Source: Stegostoma tigrinum (taxonomy: Eukaryota). From it: a stretch of 64,000 bases of DNA. The first letter of the stretch is position 1. Each line of letters starts with the position of its first letter. The notes beneath the pieces were generated by a model. That model did not search any database. It saw only the letters and a list, made by a program, of their open reading frames with translations, and was not told the DNA's origin. The DNA lies in assembly GCF_030684315.1 (NCBI RefSeq), contig NC_081358.1:2976001-3040000 (forward strand), given 5' to 3'. Positions 1 to 49,859 of this stretch are shown piece after piece. The position numbers and the translations under genes were made by a program.

Positions 1-1121
1 AAGAGGTTATAGACTCAGAGTGGAGTTGTCTCATGGAAGGATTTGATAAGAGTTTTAAAATGAGGCACAGAATATTTTACAATTCCTGTCATCAATTAAC
101 TTCAATATTATTCATCCAATTTCAAAGCTTAAATTTACTTTTGGTAAATTGCAAATTGCAATGATGAATATGATCATTTATGGGATTTGAAAGAAAACAT
201 AAAATTTGAATGATGTTGTTAAAACTCAACTGGGATCACTCATGTCCTGCATGGAAGGAAATTATTCAACATGACTTGGCGTGGCCTACATATCACTCTA
301 GGCACATACTGTGTGCAACTACCAGCTTAATTAAAAGATAAAAAGATCAATATAAGCAAAAACAGAAATTGCTAGAGAAACTCAGCAGGTCTGGCATTAA
401 CTGTGGAAAAAAAGCAGAGTTAATGTTTAGGGTCCAGTGACCCTTCTTCAGAACTGAAGTCCTAATGGATAAAGCTTTGATTTTTTTGTGATCTCTGCCA
501 GAGTATTATTCTTCCCCCAGGTGTAGATTTTCTCTGGTACAGGGAGGCCAGTATTTATTCTCAATAAATTTAACCAAAAAATTGTGTGGTCGTCATCACA
601 ATGCTGTTTGTGGGAGTTTGCTGATGTGAAATTGGCTGCTATGTTTCTGCAGAAATGACTGAATTTTAGTATATGTTTCATTGACCTCAAAAAGTTGGGC
701 ACAAGTAGTGATTATGAAAGGTATTACATAAATGCAAAACTTCATTTTAGTTTTCATTCAAAGCACAGGTTAAAGTGCCAGTCTTGCCCTTGTTGTTAAT
801 TTGAAACCACCAGTGCTCATTGTCGGAGAGGTGGGGTGCGGTGAGCAATTGTGAACCCATAACTGTGTAAACCAGGTAGTTACAGGTATCCTGGTCCCTG
901 TCCCACTGCCCTGTAGTTTTTCTACCCATTTCAGAGCAGTCTGAGACGTATCTCAGATCCTATGTTCTGCTCTCAGAGAATGGGTCCTGACTTCTTTTGA
1001 TAGCAAAGAAATTCTGAGCTTGCTTAGGTGGGCAAGCATAAATATTTTATATGTACACACACAGATACCATATTTGTATGTATGTAACTTTAGAAGAGTC
1101 AATTGGAGACTAATAAAGATG

Positions 1122-7443: not shown

Positions 7444-8645
7444 TAATGGGAACTGCAGATGCTGGAGAATCCAAGATAATAAAATGTGAGGCTGGATGAA
7501 CACAGCAGGCCAAGCAGCATCTCAGGAGCACAAAAGCTGACGTTTCAGGCCTAGACCCTTCATCAGAGAGGGGGATGGGGTGAGGGTTCTGGAATAAATA
7601 GGGAGAGAGGGGGAGGCGGACCGAAGATGGAGAGAAAAGAAGATAGGTGGAGAGAGTATGGGTGGGGAGGTAGGGAGGGGATAGGTCAGTCCAGGGAAGA
7701 CGGACAGGTCAAGGAGGTGGGATGAGGTTAGTAGATAGATGGGGGTGCGGCTTGGGGTGGGAGGAAGGGATGGGTGAGAGGAAGAACAGGTTAGGGAGGC
7801 AGAGACAGGTTGGACTGGTTTTGGGATGCAGTGGGTGGAGGGGAAGAGCTGGGCTGGTTGTGTGGTGCAGTGGGGGGAGGGGACAAACTGGGCTGGTTTA
7901 GGGATGCGGTGGGGTAAGGGGAGATTTTGAAACTGGTGAAGTCCACATTGATACCATTAGGCTGCAGGGTTCCCAGGCGGAATATGAGTTGCTGTTCCTG
8001 CAACCTTCGGGTGGCATCATTGTGGCACTGCAGGATCCTCCTGCAGTGCCACAATGATGCCACCCAAAGGTTGCAGGGCCTCCTGCAGTGCCACAATGAT
8101 GCCACCCGAAGGTTGCAGGAACAGCAACTCATATTCCGCCTGGGAACCCTGCAGCCTAATGATATCAATGAGGACTTCACCAGTTTCAAAATCTCCCCTT
8201 ACCCCACCGCATCCCTAAACCAGCCCAGTTTGTCCCCTTCCCCCACTGCACCACACAACCAGCCCAGCTCTTCTCCTCCACCCACTGCATCCCAAAACCA
8301 GTCCAACCTGTCTCTGCCTCCCTAACCTGTTCTTCCTCTCACCCATCCCTTCCTCCCACCCCAAGCCGCACCCCCATCTACCTACTAACCTCATCCCACC
8401 TCCTTGACCTGTCCGTCTTCCCTGGACTGACCTGTCCCCTCCCTACCTCCCCACCTATACTCTCCTCTCCACCTATCTTCTTTTCTCTCCATCTTCGGTC
8501 CGCCTCCCCCTCTCTCCCTATTTATTCCAGAACCCTCACCCCATCCCCCTCTCTGATGAAGGGTCTAGGCCTGAAACGTCAGCTTTTGTGCTCCTGAGAT
8601 GCTGCTTGGCCTGCTGTGTTCATCCAGCCTCACATTTTATTATCT
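7444..8645. mobile_element. 1.2-kb palindromic PLE insertion
   Basis: Arms ~7469-8034 (minus) and ~8077-8645 (plus) are near-identical. They encode the GIY-YIG C-terminus (RRLQEQQLIFRLGTLQPNGIN). Hammerheads at 7539-7566 (minus) and 8553-8580 (plus). Imperfect TSD at 7430-7443 and 8646-8659. Confidence 0.9.
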
Positions 8646-9349
8646 TTCATTATCATTGTGGTAATTTTCTTCCTATGCAAATATGAATGTCTAAAAATAG
8701 TTACTCCTGTTGCATTACTGTCCATGGAACGATATGATAATTGTCACCAGAGATAGATTTATCAATAAATCCATGACAAATGATCTAAATTGATAAATAA
8801 TGCAATGGTTACTTATAAAAGCGAATGACTTTTATGGGAATGCCTGACACCATGAATCATGGTATCCAATCTGCACATAAAGGTAACAGGATGGTTCTTG
8901 TGCTACAATGATAGTGTCTCTACCCCTGAGCCAGGTGGTCCAGATTCATTTCCTACATGCATTTAAGGTATGCTATAGCGTACCTGAAGAGGTAGATTTA
9001 AAGTATCTCTAATGTACGGCAGTGCATTCAGTGCTTTAAGCTCGCAACTTCCATAACGGTGGTTTACACCCATGAATTTCAGTTAAAAGTCGTTGCAGAC
9101 AAGTGATCTGAATCAGTCGAGATGGGATGTTTTATTTTATGTTATGAATTTCAACACTGACAGAGCTAGGGAAAGGTTACATTGCCTTCCAGTACTGCAG
9201 CGGTGGCTTGTTCAACCTGTGAACACGCAAACCACAAAAGCGACATTGAGATTGCAGTTGATGATATCAAGCTACATTTTCTTTTCTTTTTTAAAGAAAG
9301 AAATAAATACAGGAGGCTACCCTGAAGGATCATTTAGCAAACGGCATCA

Positions 9350-13915: not shown

Positions 13916-14092
13916 AAGTTGGGACTGACCCATCCCCTCCCTAAACCCCCACCTACACTCACCTTGACTGGCTCCATCCCCATCTCTTTGAACTGTCTGT
14001 CTCCTCTCCACTTCTCTTCTATCAATCCTCTATCCACCTCCCCATCTCTCCCTGTTTCAGAACTCCTTTCCCCTCCCCCATTTCTGAAGAAG

Positions 14093-16908
14093 TGATGAAC
14101 TTAGAGCATGGATCAGTACCTGGTGCTATGATGTTGTGGCCATAACAGAGACATGGGTTTCTCATGGGCAGGAATGGTTGCTGGATGTTCCAGGGTTTAG
14201 AACATTTAAAAAGAATAGGGAGGGGGGAAAAAGAGGAGGGGGTGTAGCACTACTAATCAGAGAGGGTATCACAGCTACAGAAACTTCCATTGTCGAGGAA
14301 GATCTGCCTACTGAGTCAGTATGGGTGGAAATTAGGAACAGCAAGGGAGTAGTCACCTCATTAGGGGTTTACTACAGGCCCCCCAATAGCAGCAGGGAGA
14401 TTGAAGAAAGCATAGGTCGACAGATTTTGGAAAAGTGTGGACGCAGTAGGGTTGTTGTAATGGGTGACTTTAACTTTCCTAATATTGATTGGAACCTCCT
14501 TCGAGCAGAAGATTTGAATGGAGCTGTTTTTGTAAGGTGTGTTCAGGAGGGTTTCCTAACGCAGTACGTTGACAGGCCGACGAGGGGAGAGGCCATTCTA
14601 GACTTGGTGCTCGGAAACGAGCCGGGGCAGGTATCAGATCTTGTGGTGGGAGAGCATTTTGGTGATAGTGACCATAACTGCCTCACATTTTACATAGCTA
14701 TGGAGAAGGAGAGGATGAGGCAGAATGGGAGGATATTTAATTGGGGAAGAGGAAACTATGATGCGATTAGACATGAGTTAGGAAGCATGGACTGGGAGCA
14801 GTTGTTCCATGGTAAGGGAACGAGAGACATGTGGAGATGGTTTAAGGAACAGTTGTTGGGAGTGATGAGTAAATATGTCCCTCTGAGACAGGCAAGAAGG
14901 GGTAAGATTAAGGAACCTTGGATGACGAGGGCGGTGGAGCTTCTAGTGAAAAGGAAGAAGGTAGCTTACATAAGGTGGAGGAAGCTAGGGTCAAGTTCAG
15001 CTAGAGAGGATTACATGCAGGCAAGGAAGGAGCTCAAAAATGGTCTGAGGAGAGCCAGGAGGGGGCACGAGAAAGGCTTGGCAGAAGGAATCCGGGAAAA
15101 CACAAAGGCATTTTACACTTATGTGAGGAATAAGAGAATGGTCAAAGAAAGAGTAGGGCCGATCAGGGATAGCATAGGGAACTTGTGTGTGGAGCCTGAG
15201 GAGGTAGGGGAAGCCCTAAATGAGTTTTTTGCTTCTGTCTTTACAAAAGAAACCAACTTTGTAGTGAATGAAACCTTTGAAGAGCAGGTGTGCATGCTGG
15301 AATGGATAGAGATAGAGGAAGCTGATGTGCTGAAAATTTTGTCAAACATTAAGATTGACAAGTCGCCAGGCCCGGATCAGATTTGTCCTCGGCTGCTTTG
15401 GGAAGCGAGAAATGCAATTGCTTCGCCACTTGCGAAGATCTTTGCATCCTCGCTCTCCACTGGAGTCGTACCTGAGGACTGGAGAGAGGCAAATGTAATT
15501 CCTCTCTTCAAGAAAGGAAATCGGGAAATCCCCGGCAATTATAGACCGGTAAGTCTCACGTCTGTCGTCTGCAAGGTGTTAGAAAGGATTCTGAGGGATA
15601 AGATTTATGACCATCTGGAAGAGCATGGCTTGATCAAATACAGTCAACACGGCTTTGTGAGGGGTAGGTCATGCCTTACAAACCTTATCGAGTTTTTTGA
15701 GGATGTGACTAGAAAGGTTGATGAGGGTCGAGCTGTGGATGTGGTGTATATGGACTTCAGTAAGGCATTTGATAAGGTTCCCCATGGAAGGCTCATTCAG
15801 AAGGTCAGGAGGAATGGGATACAGGGGAACTTAGCTGCTTGGATACAGAATTGGCTGGCCAACAGAAGACAGCGAGTGGTAGTAGAAGGAAAATATTCTG
15901 CCTGGAAGTCAGTGGTGAGTGGGGTTCCACAGGGGTCTGTCCTTGGGCCTCTACTGTTTGTAATTTTTATTAATGACTTGGACGAGGGAATTGAAGGATG
16001 GGTCAGCAAGTTTGCAGACGACACAAAGGTCGGAGGTGTCGTTGACAGTGTAGAGGGCTGTTGTAGGCTGCAGCGGGACATTGACAGGATGCAGAGATGG
16101 GCTGAGAGGTGGCAGATGGAGTTCAACCTGGATAAATGCGAGGTGATGCATTTTGGAAGGTCGAATTTGAAAGCTGAGTACAGGATTAAGGATAGGATTC
16201 TTGGCAGCGTGGAGGAACAGAGGGATCTTGGTGTGCAGATACATAGATCCCTTAAAATGGCCACCCAAGTGGACAGGGTTGTTAAGAAAGCATATGGTGT
16301 TTTGGCTTTCATTAACAGGGGGATTGAGTTTAAGAGTCGTGAGATCTTGTTGCAGCTCTATAAAACTTTGGTTAGACCGCACTTGGAATACTGCGTCCAG
16401 TTCTGGGCGCCCTATTATAGGAAAGATGTGGATGCTTTGGAGAGGGTTCAGAGGAGGTTTACCAGGATGCTGCCTGGACTGGAGGGCTTATCTTATGAAG
16501 AGAGGTTGACTGAGCTCGGTCTCTTTTCATTGGAGAAAAGGAGGAGGAGAGGGGACCTAATTGAGGTATACAAGATAATGAGAGGCATAGATAGAGTTGA
16601 TAGCCAGAGACTATTTCCCAGGGCAGAAATGGCTAGCACGAGGGGTCATAGTTTTAAGCTGGTTGGTGGAAAGTATAGAGGGGATGTCAGAGGCAGGTTC
16701 TTTACGCAGAGAGTTGTGAGAGCATGGAATGCGTTGCCAGCAGCAGTTGTGGAAGCAAGGTCATTGGGGTCATTTAAGAGACTGCTGGACATGCATATGG
16801 TCACAGAAATTTGAGGGTGCATACATGAGGATCAATGGTCGGCACAACATTGTGGGCTGAAGGGCCTGTTCTGTGCTGTACTGTTCTATGTTCTATGTTC
16901 TATGTTCT
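14093..16908 (+). mobile_element. Young 5'-truncated CR1 LINE
   Basis: Open ORF2, 3' UTR and (TTCTATG)n tail. Inserted into a PLE hammerhead (TTCTGAAGAAG|GGTCTAGG) with an AAG duplication. Confidence 0.95.
14094..16814 (+). CDS. CR1 ORF2: AP-endonuclease and reverse transcriptase (N-terminus slightly truncated)
   Basis: Uninterrupted frame with VAITETW, YRPP, GDFNFP, SDH, QHGF..GRSCLTNL, DFSKAFD, GVPQGSVLGP, FADD. Confidence 0.95.
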   Translation, partial: DELRAWISTWCYDVVAITETWVSHGQEWLLDVPGFRTFKKNREGGKRGGGVALLIREGITATETSIVEEDLPTESVWVEIRNSKGVVTSLGVYYRPPNSSREIEESIGRQILEKCGRSRVVVMGDFNFPNIDWNLLRAEDLNGAVFVRCVQEGFLTQYVDRPTRGEAILDLVLGNEPGQVSDLVVGEHFGDSDHNCLTFYIAMEKERMRQNGRIFNWGRGNYDAIRHELGSMDWEQLFHGKGTRDMWRWFKEQLLGVMSKYVPLRQARRGKIKEPWMTRAVELLVKRKKVAYIRWRKLGSSSAREDYMQARKELKNGLRRARRGHEKGLAEGIRENTKAFYTYVRNKRMVKERVGPIRDSIGNLCVEPEEVGEALNEFFASVFTKETNFVVNETFEEQVCMLEWIEIEEADVLKILSNIKIDKSPGPDQICPRLLWEARNAIASPLAKIFASSLSTGVVPEDWREANVIPLFKKGNREIPGNYRPVSLTSVVCKVLERILRDKIYDHLEEHGLIKYSQHGFVRGRSCLTNLIEFFEDVTRKVDEGRAVDVVYMDFSKAFDKVPHGRLIQKVRRNGIQGNLAAWIQNWLANRRQRVVVEGKYSAWKSVVSGVPQGSVLGPLLFVIFINDLDEGIEGWVSKFADDTKVGGVVDSVEGCCRLQRDIDRMQRWAERWQMEFNLDKCEVMHFGRSNLKAEYRIKDRILGSVEEQRDLGVQIHRSLKMATQVDRVVKKAYGVLAFINRGIEFKSREILLQLYKTLVRPHLEYCVQFWAPYYRKDVDALERVQRRFTRMLPGLEGLSYEERLTELGLFSLEKRRRRGDLIEVYKIMRGIDRVDSQRLFPRAEMASTRGHSFKLVGGKYRGDVRGRFFTQRVVRAWNALPAAVVEARSLGSFKRLLDMHMVTEI

Positions 16909-18239
16909 AAGGGTCTAGGTCCAAAACATCAGCTTTCCTGCTCCTCTGATGCTGCTTGACCTGATGCATTCATCCAGCTCTACACCTTGTTATCTCAGAC
17001 TCTCCAGCATCTGCAGTTCCTACCATCTATTTTCCTCACCATCATCAGCTCTGAAGAAGGGCCCATCCACTTGAAATGTTAACTCTGTTTTTCTCTCTCC
17101 ACAAAGGCTGCCAGATCTGCTAAGTTTCTCCAGCAATTTCTGTTTCTGTTTCAGAACCTCCATTGTTTGTCCATGATTCAGGTATTCATCTCAACTGCCG
17201 GAAAGTATCTAAATACTCCTTGCTCCAAATAACTAATATACGAGTGTAACTTCCCAACTCCTGTCTGTGGTAAAATAGTAAAAAACTGAGGCAATAGCTC
17301 ATCTGCCTCGGCCCATGCAATCAGATTTCAGAACTACTGTACCCACAATATTTCTTTGATGCAAAATGTTGCGGATGTTGAAAATCTGAAAGAAAATAAA
17401 ATTCTTGTGGAAACACACGGGTCACTCAGCAGAAACTCTTTCACTCACAAAATATGCTGCTTGTCCTCATTATTTCCAACTTTCTCTATTTAGAGGGAAA
17501 AAGTGCTTTATGCAGGAATCCCAAATTGGCTATCGTTTATGGGAGCTTGTTGTGCTATCACTAATTGTAATGGGGCTTTTTTGTCTAAATAGATACACAA
17601 CAAAAGTGCTGGATTTGCTGGGAAGCTCTTTGGGACACCCTCAGTTATAGTCAATACTCTAAAATGGCACACGTCAAGGTACAACGTACTCCGTTCACGA
17701 TTTGGTTAATTGGAACTGCTTCAGTGCTGAGGGAAATGGATCAGTTTTTGCGATGAGATCTTAAACTGAGGTTTCCTCTTCCCTCTTAAACATTGACGAC
17801 ACCACTAGGAGATTACTGCTCAATCAAAACCTGTTTGTTGTGGGATCCTGCTGTACACAAATGATTACATAAATACTATAATCATGTCCGTTGGAGGTAT
17901 TCTGAGCCTGCTGCATAAACGGAGCGCATTTGTACGTTTCATTTAAAATGGGCGCACATTATAGTTTATTGAGAGGGAGGAATTATTTCCGCAGCGGTCG
18001 GACCTTGAATGAATTCACTGGCTCTGGTGGAGATGACGAGTGTCATTAAAACAAAACGGAGAACTGCGGGTACTGGAGAGTTGAAATAACGAAAAAGGAG
18101 CAGACATTAGCAGATCTGACAGCACCTGTGCGAAGAAAGCGGAGTTAACGTTTCGACAGCATTTTATTTTTTGCTACAGGTGTCATTTCCTGCCGCAATA
18201 TATTTCATCGATTTCTCAGACAAGCCAGCAGCCGGAGAC

Positions 18240-19719: not shown

Positions 19720-20428
19720 GAAATAGTAGGAACTGCAGATGCTGGAGAGTCTGCGGTAACACGCTGTGGATCTGGATGAACACAGCAGGCCAAGCAGCAT
19801 CAGAGGAGCAGAAAAGCTGACGTTTCGGGTCTAGACCCTTCCTCAGAAATGGGGGATGGGGATTCTGAAATAAATAGGGAGAGAGGGGGAGGCGGAGAGA
19901 AGATGGATAGAGGTGAGAATGGATAGAGGAAAAGATAGGTGGAGTGGAGACAGACTGGTCAAAAAGGCGGGGATGGAACCAATAAAGCTGTGTAGGTGGG
20001 GATTTAGGGAGGGGATAGGTCAGTGCAGGCAGGTCAAGGGGGTGGGATGAGGTTAGTAGGTAGGAGATGGGGGTGGGGCTTGAGGTGGGAGGTGGGGATA
20101 GGTGGGTGGAAGTACAGGTTAGGGAGGTGGGGACGAGCTGGGCTGGTTTTGGGATGCAGTGGGGGAAGGGGAGATTTTGAAGCTGGTGAAGTCCACATTG
20201 ATACCACTGGGCTGCAGGGTTCCCAATCGGAATATGAGTTGCTGTTCCTGCAACCTTCGGGTGGCACGGCAGGAGGTCCAGGATGGACATGCCGTTTGAG
20301 GAGTACGAGGGGGAGTTGAAATGGTTTGGGACTGAGAGGTGCAGTTGTTCAGTGTGAACCGAGTGCAGGAGTTCTGCAAAGCGATACCCAAGCCTCCGCT
20401 TGGTTTACCCGATGTACAGGAGGCTGCA
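19720..20428 (-). mobile_element. PLE 3' fragment (GIY-YIG end and pseudo-LTR)
   Basis: RRLQEQQLIFRLGTLQPSGINVDF; hammerhead at ~19819-19846 (minus). Confidence 0.85.
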
Positions 20429-20439
20429 GAACATCTACC

Positions 20440-23400
20440 CTCAGTAGGTGACCATTTAAATGCCTTTGAAGTTGGCGACACTACTACTGTTGCAGGCAGG
20501 GCATTCCAAGCCCTTATTACTCTCTGAGTAAAGAACCTACCTCTGACATCTGTCCTATATCTATCACTCCTCAATTTAAAGCTATGTCACCTCATGCTAG
20601 CCATCACCAACTGAGGAAAAAGGCTCTCACTGTCCACCTTATCTAATCCTCTGATCATCTTGTATGTCTCTATTAAATCACCTCTTAACCTTCTTGTCTC
20701 TAACAAAAACAGCCTCAAGTCCCTCCGCCTTTCCTCAGAACACCTTCCCTCCATACCAGGCAACATCCTGGTAAATCTCCTCTGCACCCTTTCCAATGCT
20801 TCCACATCCTTCCTATAATGCAGCGACCAGAATTGTATGCAATACTCCAAGTGCGGCCGCACCAGAGTTTTGTACAGCTGCAACATGACCTCATGGCTCT
20901 GAAATTCAATCCCTCTACCAATAAAATCTAACACATCATATGCCTTCTTAACAACATTCTCAACCTGAGTGGCAACTTTCAGGGATCTATGCACATGGAC
21001 ACCGAGATCTCTCCACTCATCCATACTACCAAGAATCTTACCATTAGCCCAGTACTCTGAATTCCTGTTACTCTTTCTAAAGTGAATCACCTCACACTTT
21101 CCCACATTAAGCCCCATTTGCCACCTCTCAGCCCTGCTCTGCAGCTTATTTATGTCCCTCTGTAACCTACAACATCCTTCCGCACTATCCACAACTCCAC
21201 CGACTTTAGTGTCATCTGCAAATTTACTGACCCATCCTCCTACGCTCTCATCCAGGTCATTTATAAAAATGACAAACAGCAGTGGCCCCAAAACAGATCC
21301 TTGTGGTACACCACTAGTAACTGAAATCCAGGCTGAACATTTCCCATCAACCGCCACCCTCTGCCTTTTTACAGCTAGCCAATTTCTGATCCAAACTGTT
21401 AAATCACCCTCAATCCCATGCCTCTGTATTTTCCGCAATAGCCTACCATGGGAAGCCTTATCAAATGCTTTACCCTCATCCACCTGTTTGGTCACCTTTC
21501 CAAAGAACTCAATAAGGTTTGTAAGGCACGACCTACCCTTCACAAAACCATGTTGACTATCCCTAGTCAAATTATTCCTTTCTAGATGATTATAAATCCT
21601 AAACCTTATGACCTTTTCCACCACTTTACCCACAACTGAAGTAAGGCTCACTGGTCTATAATTACCGGGATTGTCTCTACTCCCCTTCTTGAACAAGGGG
21701 ACAATATTTGCTATCCTCCAGTCTTCTGGCACTATTCCTGTAGACAATGATGACATAAAGATCAAAGCCAAAGGTATGCAATCTCATCCCTGGCTTCCCA
21801 GAGAATCCTAGGACAAATCCCATCCGAGCCAGGGGACTTATTTATTTTCACACTTTCCAGAATTGCTAACGCCTCCTCCTTATGAACCTCAATCCTGTCT
21901 AGTCTAATAGCCTGCATCTCAGTATTCTCCTCCACAACATTGTCTCTTTCTTGTGTGAATACTGACAAAAAATATTAATTTAGTGCCTCTCCAATTTCTT
22001 CAGACTCCACGCACAATTTCCCACTACTGCCCTTGACTGGCCCTAATCTTACATCATTCTTTTGTTCCTGACATACCTATAGAAATCTTTAGGGTTTTCC
22101 TTGATCCTACCTGCCAAAGACTTCTCATGTCCCCTCCTGGCTCTTCTTAGCTCTCTCTTTAGGTCTTTCCTGGATAACTTGTAAATCTCAAGCACCCTAA
22201 CTGAGCCTTCACACCTCATCTTTACATAAGCCTCTTTCTTCCTCTTGCCAAGAGATTCAACTTCTTAATTAAACCACAGTTCCCTCGCTTGACCACTTCC
22301 TCCCTGCCTGACAGGTACATGCTTGTCAAGGACAGACAGTAGCTTTTCTTTGAATAAGCTCCACATTTCAATTGTGCCCAGCCCCTGCAGTTTCCTTTCC
22401 CATCCTATGCATCCTAAATGCTGCCTAATAGGCTCATAATTGCCTTTCTCCCCAGCGGTAACTCTTGCCCTGTGGTATATATCTATCCCTTTCCATCGCT
22501 AAAGTAAACGTAACTGAATTGTGGTCACTATCATTGAAGTGCTCACCTACCTCCAATTATAACACCTGGCCTGGTTCATTACCCAGTACCAAATCCAATG
22601 TTGCCTCACCTCTTGTTGGCCTCAGGAAACTCTCTTGCACACATTGGACAAAAACTGACCCCTCTAAAGTACTTGAACCATAGCGTCTCCAGTCAATATT
22701 TGGAAAGTTGAAGTCCCCCATAACAGCTACCCTGTTACTTTCATTCCTATCCAGAATCATCTTTGAAATCCTTTCCTCTACATCTCTGGAACTTTTTGGA
22801 GGCCTGTAGAAAACTCCCAACAGGGTGACCTCTCCTTTCCTGCTTCTTACCTCAGCCCATACCACCTCAGCAGATGAGTCCTCATCAAACATCGTGTCTG
22901 CCACCATCCTTGACTAACAATGCCACACCTTCCCCCTCTTTTACCACCTTTCCTGATCTTACTGAAACATCTAAACCCCAGAACCTGCAACAGCTATTCC
23001 TGTCCCTGCTCCATCCTTGCCTCTGTAATGGCCACAATATCGAAGTCCCAGGTACTAACCCATGCTGCAAGTTCACCCACCTTATTCCAGGCACTCTTGG
23101 CGTTGAAGTGGACACACTTCAAACCACCTTCCTGCTGGCTGGTACACTCCTGCGACCTTGAAACCTTATTCATGACCTCACTACTCTCAACTTCCTGTTC
23201 ACTGGAGCTACAAATCAGGTTCCCATCCCCCTGCTGCATCAGTTTATATCATCCTGAAGGGCATTAGCAAATTCCGCCCCCCCCCCTCAGGATATTGGTA
23301 TCCCTCTGGTTCAGGAGTAGACCATCCCATTTGTAGAGGTCCCACCTACCCCAGACTGACCCCCAATTATCCAGGTATCTGAATCCCTCCCTCCTGCACC

Positions 23401-23955
23401 ATCCCTGTAGCCACGTGTTCAACTGCTCTCGCTCCCTATTCCTCGCCTCACTAGCACGTGGCACGGCGAACGATCCCGAGATAACAACTCTGTTTGTTGG
23501 AGCTCTCAGATTCCACTCTAGTCCCTTGAATTTCAGCCTGACATCCCATTCCCCTTTCCTACCTATATCGTTAGTGCCTATGTGGACCACGACTTGGGGC
23601 TTCTCCCCGTCCCCCTTAAGGGTCCCCAAAACACTATCTGAGACACCATGGACCCTGGCACCTGGGAAGCAACACACCAACTGCGAGTCTCTCTCATTCC
23701 CACAGAATCTCCTATCTGTCCCCCTAACTATGAGCTAATGATCTCCTCCTCTCCCCCCTTCCCTTCTGAGCAACAGGGACAGGCTCTGTGCCAGAAACCT
23801 GTACCCCATGGCTTACCCCTGGCAAGTCATCCCCCTCAACAGTATCCAAAGCCGTATACGTGTTATTGAGGGGAATGGCCATAACGGATCCCTGCGCTGT
23901 CTGCCTGTTTCCTTTCCGTCCCCTGGCTGTAACCCATCTACCTTTTTCCGGTAAC
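20440..23955 (-). mobile_element. Near-complete degraded CR1 including ORF1 esterase-like domain
   Basis: RT fragment 20587-21771 (GVPQGSVLGP, FADD), EN fragments 22557-23239, ORF1 23264-23680 with CCFPGARV...VVVHIGTNDIG (SGNH/GDSL-like). Confidence 0.92.
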
Positions 23956-24555
23956 TGAGAAAAGACTGACAGGTCAAGGAGGCGGGGATAAACTGGGCTG
24001 GTATTGGGATGAGGTCGGGGATGGGGAGATTTTGTGCACCAACAAGAAACAAATAAGAAACGATTAAGGACACGGAGAGCAAGCGGGGTCACATTTTATG
24101 AAGAGGCATTAAAGTGGATGGCATTAAAGAGGCATTAAAGCAGGCCAGTCACCATCAGCGGAGTGGGAAAGTTGACGGCTCGGATCCAGACCCTTCGTCA
24201 GAACTGAGGAGGGGAAGAGAGCTGGCAAATAAATAGAGGAAGGGTGGGGCTGGGGGACGGGATGTGAAATGGTGATAGGTGGATGTAGGTAGGGGTCGGT
24301 GGGAAGGGGTGGGGGCGGAGTTGGGGAAGAAGACGAGGTAACAAGGTGTAGAGCTGGATGAACACAGCAGACCAAGCAGCATGAGAGGAGCAGGAAAGCT
24401 GACGTTTCGGACCTAGAGCCTTCTTCAGGAAAAAGATAGGCAGGTTATGCCAGGTCAAGGAGGCGGGATGGGACCGGAGTGAGGAGATCTTAAAACTGGT
24501 AGATTCTATGTTAAGACCATCGGGCTGTAAGCTCCCGAAGCGGAATAGGATGTGT

Positions 24556-25262: not shown

Positions 25263-26743
25263 AATCCATGCTCCTCCAGTTTGCATGTTGCATCATTGTG
25301 GCACTGGAGAAGGCCCAGGATGTCATCAAAGGAGACTGCATCCATTGCTCACAGTGTGGCCTCTTCTACATCGGTGAGACCAAACGCAGGCTCGGGACCA
25401 TTTTCTGAAGCATCTGCGGTCTGTACACGGTAATTAACAACACCTTCCAGTTGCCAACCATTTTAACTTCCCCTCCCATCCCACTGAGGGTAAATATATG
25501 TGGTCGGTCATGTATCTGAGGCGGGCCCTTTGTTTTGAATTGTGAGGGGCAATTTTCGGTATGACATGAGTTAGCCTGTAAGTTCACATTGAGTTCCAGC
25601 TTCGATTGGAATGAGATAGAAGGTTCTAGAGTTATTCATAAAACATTTCAGATCAATTTTCATATATTCTTATTTTAAAATGTAGGAAGAGGACAACGAG
25701 TTAAACTGCGAAAACACGCACAGATGCAGCAGATTGTTTCTGTGAAAATGCAACGTGGCTGAACCGCAGTTATCCTGAACCTTATTTGGAAATGAAATGC
25801 GACAATGTCTCGGCACCACACCAGGAAAGAGAAACCAGTCGGCATTAGTCAAGAATGGGGATGAGGCAAAGGCTTTGCAGAGGAGATGGGATGAGACCTG
25901 GGAAAATCTGGAGTGGTGAGACCGGGGTGGAGTGTGCACAACCAGGGTGCTTGTCGAAAACAGGCGATTTCTGAATTCAAGTAATGTACTGTCTTCGTGA
26001 AATACAATGTATACACATCCAGTTAATACTTGTTAAATTCCGGTTCCGGAATCTTTTCCTGGATTGACTCACCTAATGTTGGCTCAAAAAAGGATCGTTG
26101 ACCTGGACCTAAAGCTCCTGATATTATTTCGTTCAAATAATCTACCACAACAGCATGAAAATGACACATGTTTCGGCAAAGTCTCATTCATTCACAATGT
26201 AAGGACTTAAGTAATGAAGACAGATTACACAGTCATGGTTCGCATTCCCTTGATCTCAGATGATTTAGAATTAGTCTGTTTTATCGACTTGAAATTAGAG
26301 AGATTTGGGAGAGGGTAGATTAGGAATAACAAATTTCTCTGCTGGTTAGGAGTCCAGAAAGATTGGACGAAATCGTAAATTTAGAGGCCGGTCGCTCAGG
26401 AGTGATTCCAGAAAGCACTGAGCAGTGGCATTCTCTCCCCCTAAAATACAGTGATGTTCAGGATCAAATTAAACTTCATGATTCTGCTGTTGGCGTTTCC
26501 ACCTTCACTGGGCCCACCTTTTGTTTCTGTTCACTTCCCATTACCATCACCGTTCCCTTTGCCCTCCCATCCCTTCTGTTATTTAACTCCCCTTTCCTCC
26601 AGCCGGTCACAGTGAAAGCTCCCCCTTCCCTGTTTCCCTGCCTTCTTACGGGCTTAACACTCTGTCAATGTCTAAACGCTTTCCTGCTCAGGTCTCTGAA
26701 GTAGTAACTCTGTTTCTGTCTCACCACAGGTGCTGCTTCAGTA

Positions 26744-27073
26744 TAGAACATAGAACATTACAGCACAGTACAGGCCCTTCGGCCTTCGATGTTGTGCCGA
26801 CCTGTCATACCAATCTGAAGCCCATCTAACCTACACTATTCCATGTACGTCCATATGCTTATCCAATGACGACTTAAATGTACCTAAAGTTGGCGAATCT
26901 ACTACCGTTGCAGGCAAAGCGTTCCATTCCCTTACTACTCTCTAAGTAAAGAAACTACCTCTGACATCTGTCCTATATCTTTCACCCCTCAATTTAAAGC
27001 TATGCCCCCTCGTGCTCGCCGTCACCATCCTAGGAAAAAGGCTCTCCCTAACCACCCTATCTAACCCTCTGAT
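26744..27073 (-). mobile_element. Young CR1 3' fragment in the V2 upstream region
   Basis: (TAGAACA)2 tail; absent from the paralogous site upstream of V6 (~46675). Confidence 0.92.
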
Positions 27074-28077: not shown

Positions 28078-28213
28078 GATCAGAGATAATGGGAACTGCA
28101 GATGCTGGACAATCCAAGATAACAAAGTGTGGAGCTGGATGAACACAGCAGGCCAAGCAGCATCTCAGGAGCTCTGCTTGGCCTTCTGTGTTCATCCAGC
28201 TTCACACTTTGTT
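28078..28213. mobile_element. Mini palindromic PLE end with 14-bp TSD
   Basis: TSD ATGCAAAATAATGT at 28064-28077 and 28214-28227. Confidence 0.8.
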
Positions 28214-28339
28214 ATGCAAAATAATGTCTTTGTTTTATTTGGAGTAACTTGTGATCTGTGGTGCTCCGCCTAAAAGGACGGTGAAAACTGTTTCAGTAGT
28301 CACTTTCGAACATAGACTAAGGACTTGAAATTATGCAGG

Positions 28340-33825: not shown

Positions 33826-34003
33826 GATAACGGGAACTGCAGATGCTGGAGAATCCAAGGTAATAAAATGTGAGGCTGGATGAACACAGCAGGCCCAGCA
33901 GCATCTCAGGAGCACATCTGATGAAGGGTCTAGGCCCGAAACGTCAGCTTTTGTGCTCCTGAGATGCGGCTGGGCCTGCTGTGTTCATCCAGCCTCACAT
34001 TTT
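33826..34003. mobile_element. Mini palindromic PLE end upstream of V4
   Basis: Inverted termini; hammerhead at 33918-33945; TGTTTGAATAYGTT on both flanks. Confidence 0.8.
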
Positions 34004-34332
34004 AGTATGTTGTTTGAATATGTTGGCTGCTTTCCCGAGGCAGCGACAAGTATAGATGGTAGAAGAAAATTATTGCAGATGCTGGAATCTGTACTGAAAA
34101 CCAAAAAAAAATGCTGGAGATCACAGTGGGTCAGGTAGCGTCCGTGGAGAGAAAGCAGGCTGACGTTCCGAGTCTAGATGACTTTTCGTGAGAGAAGTCA
34201 ATGCGTTGACTGGTGTGTTGGACTGGGCGGTGTTGGCGGACGGGTTTAAAGAAAATGTCAATAAGGCCCACCCATTCAATGTAAACGTCATCCTTGAGGC
34301 TACACGAAGGCTCAACTTTGGGTGAAATAGAT

Positions 34333-42651: not shown

Positions 42652-42860
42652 AACAAGGTGTAGAGCTGGATGAACACAGCAGGCCAAGCAGCATCAGAGG
42701 AGCAAGAAGGCTGACGTTTCAGGCCTAGGTCTGCTTCATCAGGTCTAGGCCTGAAACGTCAGCCTTCCTGCTCCTATGATGCTGCTTGATCTACTGTGTC
42801 CATCCAGCTCTACACCTCCTTATTTCGGATTCTCCAGCATCTGCAGTTCCTATGATCTCT
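42652..42860. mobile_element. Mini palindromic PLE end with 17-bp TSD
   Basis: TSD TAGACTCACCCAATGTT at 42635-42651 and 42861-42877; empty paralogous site at ~26063-26085. Confidence 0.85.
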
Positions 42861-42979
42861 TAGACTCACCCAATGTTGGTTCAAATTGAAGTGTCGTTGA
42901 CCCGGACCTACAGGCTCCTGATTGTATTTCGCACAGTAATCTAACACTACAGCATGAAGTAAGACATATTCGAGAGCGA

Positions 42980-44912: not shown

Positions 44913-45741
44913 ATATTCGAGAACGTCTCATTCATTCACAATCGAAAGAATTAAGTATTGAAGACAGATTCAATAATCTTGGCTTACATTCGCTTCACCT
45001 TAAATGAATAAAAACCGATCTCATTGAACTGTTTGAAATGATGTGGAAGTGCAGGTATTGGACGAGGGTGGACAAAGCCAGACATCACAAGACACTTAGC
45101 CTGACCAAAGTGCAGTGCTTCAAAAGCTTCTGCTTTCAAATACACTTAAAAAGAGAAAGGATCGGTAGAGAGTAGATTAGGAGAAATAAATTTCTCTGGT
45201 AGAGAGGAGTCCGAAAAGATTGGATAAAATCCTAAAATTACACGCCGTTCGCCCAGAGATAATTCCAGAAAGCACTGAGAAGTGGCATTCTCTCCCCCTA
45301 AAATAGTGATGTTCAGGATCAAATTAAACTTCATGATTCTGCTGTCGCCGTTTCCACCTTCACTGGGCCCACCTTTTGTTTCTTCATCAGAGAGGGGGAT
45401 GGGGGGAGGGAACTGGAATAAATAGGGAGAGAGGGGGAGGCGGACCGAAGATGGAGAGTAAAGAAGATAGGTGGAGAGAGTGTAGGTTGGGAGGTAGGGA
45501 GGGGATAGGTCAGTCCAGGGAAGACGACAAGAGAGTTGCAATGGGAGAGAGATTCCCTGAGTTTGGTCCGGAGGGAGGAGGGTAACTTCTTCAGGTTAGG
45601 CATCCCTGGAAGAGGCTTCGCAGTGAGGTTAAAATAGTATCAGAGATAATGGGGACTGCAGATGCTGGAGATTCCAAGATAATAAAATGTGAGGCTGGAT
45701 GAACACAGCAGGCCAAGCAGCATCTCAGGAGCACAAAAGCT

Positions 45742-45769
45742 GACGTTTCGGGCCTAGACCCTTCATCAG
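45742..45769 (-). ncRNA. Minimal hammerhead motif, antisense copy
   Basis: Exact reverse complement of 46312-46339. Confidence 0.7.
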
Positions 45770-46311
45770 AGAGGGGGATGGGGGGAGGGAACTGGAATAA
45801 ATAGGGAGAGAGGGGGAGGCGGACCGAAGATGGAGAGTAAAGAAGATAGGTGGAGAGAGTGTAGGTGGGGAGGTAGGGAGGGGATAGGTCAGTCCAGGGA
45901 AGACGACAAGAGAGTTGCAATGGGAGAGAGATTCCCTGAGGTTGGTCCGGAGGGAGGAGGGTAACTTGTGCTCCTGAGATGCTGCTTGGCCTGCTGTGTT
46001 CATCCAGCCTCACATTTTATTATCTTGGAATCTCCAGCATCTGCAGTCCCCATTATCTCTGATACTATTTTAACCTCACTGCGAAGCCTCTTCCAGGGAT
46101 GCCTAACCTGAAGAAGTTACCCTCCTCCCTCCGGACCAACCTCAGGGAATCTCTCTCCCATTGCAACTCTCTTGTCGTCTTCCCTGGACTGACCTATCCC
46201 CTCCCTACCTCCCCACCTACACTCTCTCCACCTATCTTCTTTACTCTCCATCTTCGGTCCGCCTCCCCCTCTCTCCCTATTTATTCCAGTTCCCTCCCCC
46301 CATCCCCCTCT

Positions 46312-46339
46312 CTGATGAAGGGTCTAGGCCCGAAACGTC
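46312..46339 (+). ncRNA. Minimal type I hammerhead ribozyme motif (representative; over 10 related copies in the window)
   Basis: CTGATGA-A-GGGTC-TA-GGCCC-GAAAC-GTC: core boxes, stem II, palindromic ACGT mini stem III and GUC triplet, in a PLE pseudo-LTR where such motifs are known. Confidence 0.7.
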
Positions 46340-46836
46340 AGCTTTTGTGCTCCTGAGATGCTGCTTGGCCTGCTGTGTTCATCCAGCCTCACATTTTATT
46401 ATCTTGGAATCTCCAGCATCTGCAGTCCCCATTATCTCTCTCTCTCCACCTTTTGTTTCTGTTCACTTCCCATTACCATCACCGTTCCCTTTGCCCTCCC
46501 ATCCCTTCTGTTATTTTACTCCCCTTTCCTCCAGCCGGCCACAGTGAAAGCTCCCCCTTCCCTGTTTCCCTGCCTTCTTACGGGCTTAACACTCTGTCAA
46601 TGTCTTAACGCTTTCCTGCTCAGGTCTCTGAAGTAGTAACTCTGTTTCTGTCTCACCACAGTTGCTGCTTCAGTATTTCCAATATTTTCTGTTTATATTG
46701 CAAAGAACCAACTTGCAGTGCAGGGGGCGGGCTTGAAACCCTGACCAATATCTCACTGATTGGTTTGAAGGAAGTGAATCGTTTCCTTTTAGTCTCTAAC
46801 CAGCTGGTTGAGAGAACAGTTGAAGATTGAGTGAAG

Positions 46837-47784: not shown

Positions 47785-48953
47785 AAAGGGGTGAGGGAGG
47801 AGGTGTGGGGGCAAGTGTAGCATTTCCTGCGGTTGCAGGGGAAGGTGCCGGGTGTGGTGGGGTTGGAGGGCAGTGTGGAGCGGACAAGGGAGTCACGGAG
47901 AGAGTAGTCTCTCTGGAAAGCAGACAAGGGTGGGGATGGAAAAATGTCTTTGATGGTTGGGTCGGATTGTAGATGGTGGAAGTGTCGGAGGATGATGCGT
48001 TTGGTGGGGTGGTACGTGAGGAAGAGGGGGATTTTCTTTTGGCGGTTACTGTGGGGACGGGGTGTGAGGGATGAGTTGGGGGAAATGCGGGAGACACGGT
48101 GGAAAGAATTCGACCGTGTCTCCCGCACTTCCCACAACTCATCTCTCACACCCCCTCACCTGCCCCCATACCTCCTCCCTCACCCCATCCCAGGCCCCAA
48201 GAAGACTTTCTATATCAAGCAGATGCTCATCTGCACATCTGCCAATGTAGTATACAGCATCCACTGTACCCGGTGTGGCTTCCTCTACATTGGGGAAATC
48301 AAGCAGAGCCTTGGGGTCCGCTTTGCAGAACACCTATGCTCGGTTCGCTATAAACAACAGCACTTCCTAGTCGCGAACCATTTTAACTCCCCCTCCCATT
48401 CCTTTGACGACATGTCCATCCTGGGCCTCCTGCAGTGCCATAATGATGCCACCCGAAGGTTGCAGGGACAGCAACTCATATTCCGCTTGGGAACCCTGCA
48501 GCCCAATGGTATCAATGTGGATTTCTCAAGCTTCAAAATCTCCCCTCCCCCTGCTGCACCCCAAAGCCAGCACAGCTCGTCCCCGCCTCCCTAACCTGTT
48601 CTTCCTCTCACATATCCCCTCCTCCCACCTCACGCCGCACCTCCATTTCCTACCTACTAATCTCATCCCGCCCCCTTGACCTGTCCGTCCTCCCGGGACT
48701 GACCTATCCCCTCCCTACCTCCCACCTACACTCACCTCTACTGGCTCCATCCCCGCCTCTTTAAATTGTCTGTCTCCTATTTTTTTCCTCTATCCATTTC
48801 GATCCCCCCTCTCTCCCTATTTATTTCAGAATCCTCTCCTCCTCCCCTTTTTCTGATGAGGGGTCTAGGCCTGAAACGTCAGCGTCTGTGCTCCGAAGAT
48901 GCTGCTTGGCCTGCTGTGTTCATGCAGCATCTGCAGTTCCCATTATCTCTGAT
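47785..48953. mobile_element. PLE with 5' inversion (minus ~47785-48105, plus ~48106-48953)
   Basis: CTSANVVYSIHCTRCGFLYIGEIKQSLGVRFAEH; hammerhead at ~48853-48880. Confidence 0.88.
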
Positions 48954-49859
48954 ACAATGAGTCAATTGGGTTTGTATTCACTGGAAGAATGAGTGTGAAT
49001 CTCATGGAAACCTATATCATTCGAACAGGGCTAAATTGCAGGAAAGATTTCCCCCATCGTGGGTGACTCCAGAGCCAGGGCTCACAGTTTAAAGAATAAA
49101 ACAAGGATGTTTTAGGACTAAGAAGTGAAGAGTTTGCTTCAGCCAGAGAGTTGAGAACCTGTGGAATTTATTCCGCAGAAAGTGGTTGAGGCCAAGCATT
49201 GAATATTTTCAAGAAGGAAGTCGGTGTAGCTCTTGTTACGAAAGGGATCAAGGGTTATGGGGGCAAGTGTGGGGACGAGATGGGATTCAAGTATTGAGCT
49301 CCGTGATCAGTCAATATCATATTAAATAGTGGAGCAGGGTCGAGAGGTGGAACCGCCTGCTCTGCTCCTGTCTTTTATGGTTCTATATTTTAGGGCTACC
49401 GGGACAAGGCAATGCAATTGATTGAGAGATTTTTCGGAGAAGCAGAACCGGCAAAACGATAGGCTGAATAGTCTAGCCTTTACTGGAAGATTCTATGGTG
49501 CCACCATCTACAACTCAGGCTAAAAGTTCCTCCACTCCAAAGTACCATGTTTAGCGAATTTTTCACGTTGAAACGTCAAAAGATCCCAGTAACTGGTTCT
49601 CTGGACGAGCAAGCCAGGAGATTAAAATAGCTGCAATGCTAACATCGCCTGCGCTTTTCCCCCAATCGTAAGTCATATCGCTGCCGTTTTCAGATGACAC
49701 CCAGAAATATCAACTTGATGTCGGGATTGTGGAACAGAATTGTTAAAACTTACCCTCCTGCTAACAATGGAAGAATGTGCAATTCTTTAGCACAGTTCCC
49801 AGCCTCGGAAAGCCCCGCAAAACATCTTACAGCCCATGAATTATTCTCTGAAGAGAGCG

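Follow-up and report, generated by a model that had tools for sequence, protein, structure and literature searches.

The DNA analyzed here, a 64-kb stretch of a shark genome that we refer to as the window, contains an insert of 1,062 bp (45384-46445) upstream of a T-cell-receptor-like V gene. The insertion is real and recent, and the inserted sequence is a non-coding, internally deleted Penelope-like element (PLE). It consists of two arms in opposite orientation, both composed of one 379-nt unit, which we defined as 45966-46344 on the plus strand and to which all unit positions below refer. The unit has a GC content of 52.5%, contains one hammerhead motif and is non-coding, without similarity to PLE proteins. 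The features of the insert and of its paralogous site are the following.

45369-45383, no strand: target-site duplication, left copy, perfect 15 bp, CCACCTTTTGTTTCT
45382-45967, minus strand: minus arm, 586 nt or 1.55 units, running from unit 149 to 379 and then from 1 to 355 (minus-strand reading)
45382-45390, minus strand: remnant of a hammerhead box, reduced to CTGATGAAG, at the left (outer) end of the minus arm
45527-45641, minus strand: copy of unit 96-210 in the minus arm, absent elsewhere in the window, with a second, partial copy at 45906-45967
45742-45769, minus strand: sole complete predicted minimal hammerhead core of this strand, CTGATGA..GAAACGTC
45966-46439, plus strand: plus arm, 474 nt or 1.25 units, running from unit 1 to 379 and then from 1 to 95
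46061-46175, plus strand: unit 96-210, whose first 5-6 nt (GATACT) belong to the PLE tail and whose other ~108 nt occur nowhere else in the window
46176-46344, plus strand: PLE 3'UTR part, unit 211-379, homologous to PLE copies in the window
46312-46339, plus strand: sole complete predicted minimal hammerhead core of this strand, CTGATGA..GAAACGTC, with GTC at 46337-46339 and predicted cleavage after C46339
46440-46445, plus strand: CTCTCT, filler sequence that separates the tail from the right copy of the duplication
46446-46460, no strand: target-site duplication, right copy, CCACCTTTTGTTTCT
26514-26528, no strand: empty paralogous target site with a single copy of CCACCTTTTGTTTCT, upstream of the paralogous V gene

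An initial annotation of this DNA had described an exact 379-bp period on both strands, and direct repeats at 45382/45761 (207 nt, 99% identical) and 45966/46345 (95 nt, 100%) have precisely this spacing. In inverted orientation the arms match each other over 355 nt at 99% and over 326 nt at 100%. Every base of the arms could be mapped to the one unit with 2 differences in 1,060 nt; these lie at 45488 and 45562, are both C>A on the element strand, and both fall in the outer unit of the minus arm. The lengths of 1.55 and 1.25 units also agree with the earlier claim of a template longer than one unit. TRF found no tandem array at the locus because each arm holds fewer than 2 copies, and a tRNA scan and a promoter/terminator scan of the insert region returned no matches.

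The ends of the arms are informative. The outer end of the minus arm falls inside the hammerhead box, where 2 nt are common to the arm and the duplication. At the center of the insert, TT at 45966-45967 is common to both arms, the junction reads GGTAACTT followed directly by GTGCTCC, and the arms are out of phase, with unit 149 joined to unit 1. The arms had been thought to begin and end at arbitrary phases, which does not hold for the plus arm, since this arm ends at the usual PLE tail and starts 5-7 nt past the predicted cleavage site.

Near-identical copies, a perfect 15-bp duplication and an empty paralogous site had been cited as signs of a recent insertion, and these observations stand. 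When the insert and one copy of the duplication are removed, the locus is colinear with 26287-26744 without a break, at ~98% identity near the junction and 92.5% over the 455-nt alignment. The two sites belong to a segment duplication carrying the V2 and V6 genes, which are ~96% identical. Because the paralogous site is empty, the insertion is younger than this V2/V6 segment duplication.

A BLAST search with the unit found more than 20 copies of unit 211-379 plus 1-~95 in the 64-kb window. In two PLE copies of the window the repeat comes after the end of an ORF for a GIY-YIG endonuclease, and these connect the unit to its parent family.

7444-8646, no strand: parent PLE family, reference copy, a pair of 3' parts in inverted orientation, both comprising the C-terminus of the GIY-YIG ORF, 3'UTR, hammerhead and tail
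48130-48960, plus strand: older 5'-truncated PLE copy with GIY-YIG domain, 3'UTR, hammerhead and a tail ending ..ATCTCTGATAC

Both arms of the reference copy are 94-97% identical to unit 211-379 plus 1-90/95, and the older copy is 70-94% identical to the unit, piecewise. The translation of 48130-48594 (..VVYSIHC..C..LYIGE...EH..) gives a weak Pfam GIY-YIG match, and 31 database proteins match this endonuclease with E down to 2e-52, mostly EukProt models together with one skate protein. The PLE parentage proposed earlier is therefore upheld, with unit 211-379 plus 1-95 homologous to the 3'UTR behind the end of the GIY-YIG ORF. The RT and the GIY-YIG domain are indeed absent from the unit, which joins the stretch on the tail side straight to the 3' part of the PLE. 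Parent copies in the window read ..CCTCCTTGACCTGTC followed by CGTCTTCCC, while the unit reads ..CAACTCTCTTGT followed by CGTCTTCCC, and the junction at 210/211 is therefore a deletion breakpoint with TGT(C) microhomology. The stop codon of the PLE is ~90 nt upstream of this breakpoint, and among the loose ends of the read contigs the parent context dominates. As had been reported, the junction CAACTCTCTTGTCGTCTTCCCTGG occurs twice on the minus arm and once on the plus arm; the exact 210/211 junction is found at no other locus in the window. Metagenome scans with the junction and with the hammerhead-plus-tail returned 0 matches, and the open frame across the junction had no match in a protein word search.

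A locus-specific stretch beside the PLE terminus does exist as described earlier, but its length is ~108 nt instead of 115. The PLE tail in other copies ends at unit 98-101 (..CTCTGATACT), so only unit ~102-209 is specific to the locus within the window. A low-stringency search found no other copy of the 115-nt stretch in the window, and there is no full-length PLE within it. We regard the ~108-nt stretch as a candidate for the sequence that follows the tail in longer PLE relatives, and it may stem from the 5' region of the parent PLE.

Two other reverse transcriptase regions in the window were considered as the parent PLE and rejected. Both the 892-aa ORF (14136-16814) and the RT (20587-21771) belong to APE+RT LINEs that are nested in or lie beside PLE tails. 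The first of these LINEs (14083-16908, plus strand) is 5'-truncated, has an intact APE+RT ORF of 892 aa (14136-16814) and a (GTTCTAT)n 3' end, and interrupts an older PLE tail (13922-14082 and 16909-17030) exactly within its hammerhead box. The second (~20030-24100, minus strand) contains APE, RT and an ORF1 that is GDSL-esterase-like, all with disrupted reading frames, and has pieces of PLE tail around it.

The 108-nt stretch is multi-copy. The read evidence consists of short-read contigs, which carry neither molecule ends nor strand information, and no run containing the stretch is on record as RNA. In contigs of organisms A, B and C the tail continues into the 108-nt stretch, and a contig of organism C matches all of 46034-46172 but for one base. 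In run X1 the summed depth is 1e5-6e5 for the stretch, ~1e7 for the tail and ~15 for unique flank, values that are not copy numbers. A contig of organism B departs from the unit after position 210, and its different continuation implies that the parent is longer; a loose-end string from organism B is absent from the window. Other X1 contigs join unit ~198-209 to ~263-281, skipping 61-82 nt at depths of 500-1300 each. These would give units of ~297-318 nt and point to variant short-unit families. A further 10 contigs are perfect palindromes centered just upstream of the hammerhead (45771->46310), pointing to abundant fold-back derivatives. No short contig spans the flank-insert junctions or the center junction.

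Four runs of organism A (X5-X8), of 47-63 million letters each, each contain about half of the sampled words. In the X5 contigs, which reach lengths of 7.5 kb, the hammerhead-plus-tail is very deep and the unique flanks are at zero. Records do not give the library type of X5-X8, and these runs were excluded as expression evidence; if they are RNA runs, tail-bearing transcripts would be abundant.

Evgen'ev and Arkhipova (2005) reportedly described both non-autonomous PLEs and the architecture of PLE insertions. Four other two-arm inverted PLE inserts occur in the window, at 7444-8646, 28079-28215, 33826-34012 and 42665-42866, with duplications of 9-17 bp. In the 3 inserts whose outer ends could both be located, the arms terminate at unit ~60 on one side and at ~90-98 on the other, leaving a one-sided tail of 35-40 nt; the left arm at our locus ends at unit 355, versus unit ~60 in these inserts. 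The published PLE pattern combines a partial tandem, next to it an inverted copy truncated at the 5' end, and a tail of 30-40 bp on one side (PMC8557442). Taken together, the four similar inserts and this published pattern identify the inverted multimer as the normal footprint of the family. It is thus an ordinary form of PLE insertion and no special feature of this locus.

By the description of Craig et al. (2021, PMC8557442), in which non-autonomous PLE derivatives share the 3' end of autonomous elements, the locus fits a non-autonomous PLE well. Its 3' end is homologous to that of an autonomous GIY-YIG PLE, and its own RT and endonuclease are absent. The insertion shows the partial tandem (pseudo-LTR), the inverted 5'-truncated arm and the one-sided tail, as well as a duplication of the variable kind, longer than 4 bp, and a hammerhead in the terminal repeat. 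Unlike the published elements, the locus has a body of only ~108 nt in a unit of 379 nt, and its left arm appears to have been primed inside the hammerhead box instead of at the 3' end.

Several arms in the window start close to the hammerhead cleavage site. Arm starts at 33916, 28172 and 39554 fall at unit 2-8, the plus arm at 45966 likewise starts near the site, and by our own rough estimate this clustering of 5' ends exceeds a uniform spread. The clustered starts hint at cleavage in vivo. More generally, the 5' ends of PLE tail copies form two clusters, one just 5' of the CTGATGA box (unit 343-347; 11537, 55106, 33917 and 1602) and one 3-8 nt 3' of the predicted cleavage site (unit 1-8; 33916, 28172, 39554 and 45966). 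It is possible that transcription starts just upstream of the hammerhead, which would then cut off a leader of ~30 nt.

PLE minimal hammerheads have reportedly been the subject of a study by Lunse et al. (2017). The motif in the unit has the type I core order CTGATGA-A-GGGT-CTAG-GCCC-GAAA-CG-T-C (CUGANGA ... GAAA ... UH). The base inserted after A9 is A in the window copies except for one with G; the closing pair 10.1-11.1 is G..C or G..T, and core position 7 varies, as is permitted. Helix II consists of 4 bp closed by a CUAG loop, its innermost pair being U.G, C-G or U-A among the window copies. Most copies have a palindromic ACGT (ACGU), and the motif lacks helix III and loop 3, in line with the description of minimal motifs (PMC4209133). 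Helix I has 2 bp (A1.1-U2.1, G1.2-C2.2), fewer than the 4-5 bp of that description, a length known only for the D. virilis variant (PMC4209133). The motif is predicted to be a PLE minimal hammerhead of the dimer type.

The comparison with Cervera and de la Pena (2014, PMC4209133) is close in the core, with the CUGANGA / GAAA / GUC boxes, the extra base at 9/10.1 and the G10.1-C11.1 pair, and in the absence of helix III, where a palindromic ACGU permits a dimeric helix III. It differs in the short helix I, as in the D. virilis variant, and in a helix II of 4 bp with a CUAG loop, where the published motifs have 6-8 bp. Rfam hammerhead families gave no match at gathering thresholds over the whole window or at E<=10 in the region, probably because of the missing helix III, which PLE minimal hammerheads lack relative to the classical motif (PMC7761336). 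Rfam matches to SRP and MIR408 in the region were rejected as spurious products of the inverted repeat. For minimal motifs, the published cleavage is weak and confined to dimers (PMC4209133). The initial annotation had placed one hammerhead in each unit; the motif is there, but only one copy per arm is complete and the second on the minus arm is truncated. With one complete hammerhead per strand, the locus cannot itself release a 379-nt monomer.

It had also been suggested that the insert represents a retrozyme. That vertebrate retrozymes derive from PLEs has been shown in Xenopus and surveyed in one cartilaginous fish, in which the mean retrozyme consensus is 363 bp (Li, Clavereau and Pollet 2026, 10.64898/2026.07.22.740005); retrozymes had been regarded as PLE derivatives before (PMC7761336). 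A retrozyme family of sharks descended from PLEs is thus an idea that the 2026 preprint already covers. In the locus itself, the unit size of 379 nt lies within the 150-450 bp range of retrozymes and there is one type I hammerhead. The preprint defines an array by at least 2 consecutive complete motifs; the locus has one per strand and no TRF array, and by this criterion it is not an active retrozyme.

Animal non-LTR retrozymes (Cervera and de la Pena 2020, PMC7229834; Li, Clavereau and Pollet 2026) resemble the locus in their short non-coding unit with one type I hammerhead, their longer-than-unit copies and long duplication, and their co-occurrence and terminus homology with PLEs. The locus is unlike them in several ways. 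Their hammerheads are consecutive, complete and canonical, with a helix III stub and contacts between loop 1 and loop 2, whereas ours is minimal and has no such contacts; their GC is below 50%, versus 52.5%. The predicted RNA of the locus is not highly self-paired, with fold z-scores of +0.2 as a circle and +0.6 as a linear molecule and 42% of bases paired. What stands of the retrozyme suggestion is the PLE parentage and the loss of RT and endonuclease; paired complete hammerheads, a hammerhead beyond the minimal type and unusual folding were not found.

According to Ostertag and Kazazian (2001), L1 twin priming is said to proceed by both staggered nicks priming cDNA on the RNA. The product is reportedly an inverted 5' part joined by microhomology to a direct 3' part within one duplication. 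The locus shares with this model the apparent priming from both nicks, the microhomology join and the single duplication around everything. It differs in that the enzyme here would be a GIY-YIG PLE and not an APE LINE, and in that the arms exceed the unit length. Both arms can extend beyond one unit because the template is periodic.

We consider it probable that the insert arose in a single young event, in which a short non-autonomous PLE was inserted by enzymes supplied in trans, with both nicks priming on a template longer than one unit. One part of this unit would be the last ~270 nt of an autonomous PLE, comprising 3'UTR, minimal dimer-type hammerhead and tail, and the other would be the ~108-nt stretch found behind the tail in longer relatives, the RT and GIY-YIG having presumably been lost by deletion at the TGT(C) microhomology. 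A PLE endonuclease and RT acting in trans would make two nicks staggered by 15 bp, and both nick 3'-OH ends would prime cDNA synthesis. The bottom-strand 3'-OH would prime at the normal 3' tail of the RNA (unit 95, plus CTCTCT) to give the plus arm, with synthesis running back through one whole unit and halting 5-7 nt short of the cleavage site. The top-strand 3'-OH (..TTTCT) would prime internally at unit 353-355 through a 2-nt match to give the minus arm, with synthesis running back 1.55 units across an uncleaved hammerhead. The two cDNAs would then be joined at the 2-nt microhomology (TT).

Since the minus arm crosses an uncleaved hammerhead and contains two copies of the body, its template must have been multimeric, circular or switched between RNAs. 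Placed along a single periodic RNA, the arms leave a gap of only 24 nt between them (unit 356-379), so a linear transcript of ~1,084 nt (~2.9 units) is enough. The simplest template we can propose is multimeric RNA transcribed from a tandem master array with at least ~2.9 units. A circular RNA or jumps between templates may also have served, although neither is needed for the structure.

In a true retrozyme the 379-nt unit would instead be excised by its hammerheads, ligated into a circle and copied by a PLE RT in rolling-circle fashion. The exact 379 period of two arms that each exceed one unit, and the start of the plus arm 5-7 nt from the predicted cleavage site, are both consistent with such a source, and circular RNA was proposed in 2014 as a template for longer-than-unit PLE copies (PMC4209133; see also PMC7761336). 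The plus arm, however, ends at the normal 3' tail of a linear PLE, an end that a circle does not have. The circular fold of the unit (-58.9 kcal/mol, z = +0.2 against shuffles, 42% paired) is also unlike published circles, which are highly self-paired (PMC7761336), and the minimal hammerhead belongs to a type with low activity in vitro (PMC4209133). Against rolling-circle copying there is further the lack of any RNA run among those containing the stretch and, as a weak argument, the 2 differences over the 207 positions of the minus-arm part that was copied twice. We therefore consider a true retrozyme unlikely.

Many fold-back derivatives of PLEs occur in the window and among the contigs (the joint 45771->46310, 10 contigs). 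The inverted structure could have existed before insertion, in a master copied at the RNA or DNA level, or have formed when a simple insertion underwent fold-back duplication in place. A single duplication encloses the arms, which are 99-100% identical, and their out-of-phase meeting (unit 149 to unit 1) is unlike a fold-back. An inverted master, with near-complementary arms of ~470 nt, would also make a poor template for RT, and these routes appear very improbable. The same out-of-phase center is unlike a chimeric fold-back read and counts against an assembly artifact in a repeat-rich region. Tandem and inverted PLE structures are known to confuse assemblies (PMC8557442) and no contig crosses the junctions, but the perfect duplication, the exact empty paralogous site and an architecture seen in four other inserts of the window leave a misassembly scarcely credible.

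Among database sequences, one from Hemiscyllium ocellatum matches the V gene next to the insert best (73% identity), and bird TCR-gamma chains come next. The start codon of this TCR-gamma-like V gene (46837) lies 376 bp downstream of the insert, which the paralogous V gene lacks. If transcribed, the insert would fold into a near-perfect hairpin of up to 355 bp. An effect of this ~1-kb hairpin-forming insert on V promoter use or on the production of small RNAs is possible.

The locus adds no new class of element, as both the kind of element and the pattern of insertion are known. The tandem and inverted insertion mode of PLEs and the role of their minimal hammerheads in vivo are questions of the field (PMC8557442, PMC7761336). 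For testing models of PLE priming and template use, the locus is an unusually clean recent case because of its exact empty site, perfect duplication, near-identical arms and an arm end beside the cleavage site. A broader reading, which we hold to be doubtful, is that sharks may carry a family of minimal-hammerhead units (variants of 297-379 nt) that is processed in vivo at the predicted GUC and copied by a PLE RT from multimeric or circular RNA. If this is true, the locus and the arm 5' ends 3-8 nt past the cleavage site would be the first genomic footprint of PLE minimal hammerheads cutting in vivo and defining RNA ends.
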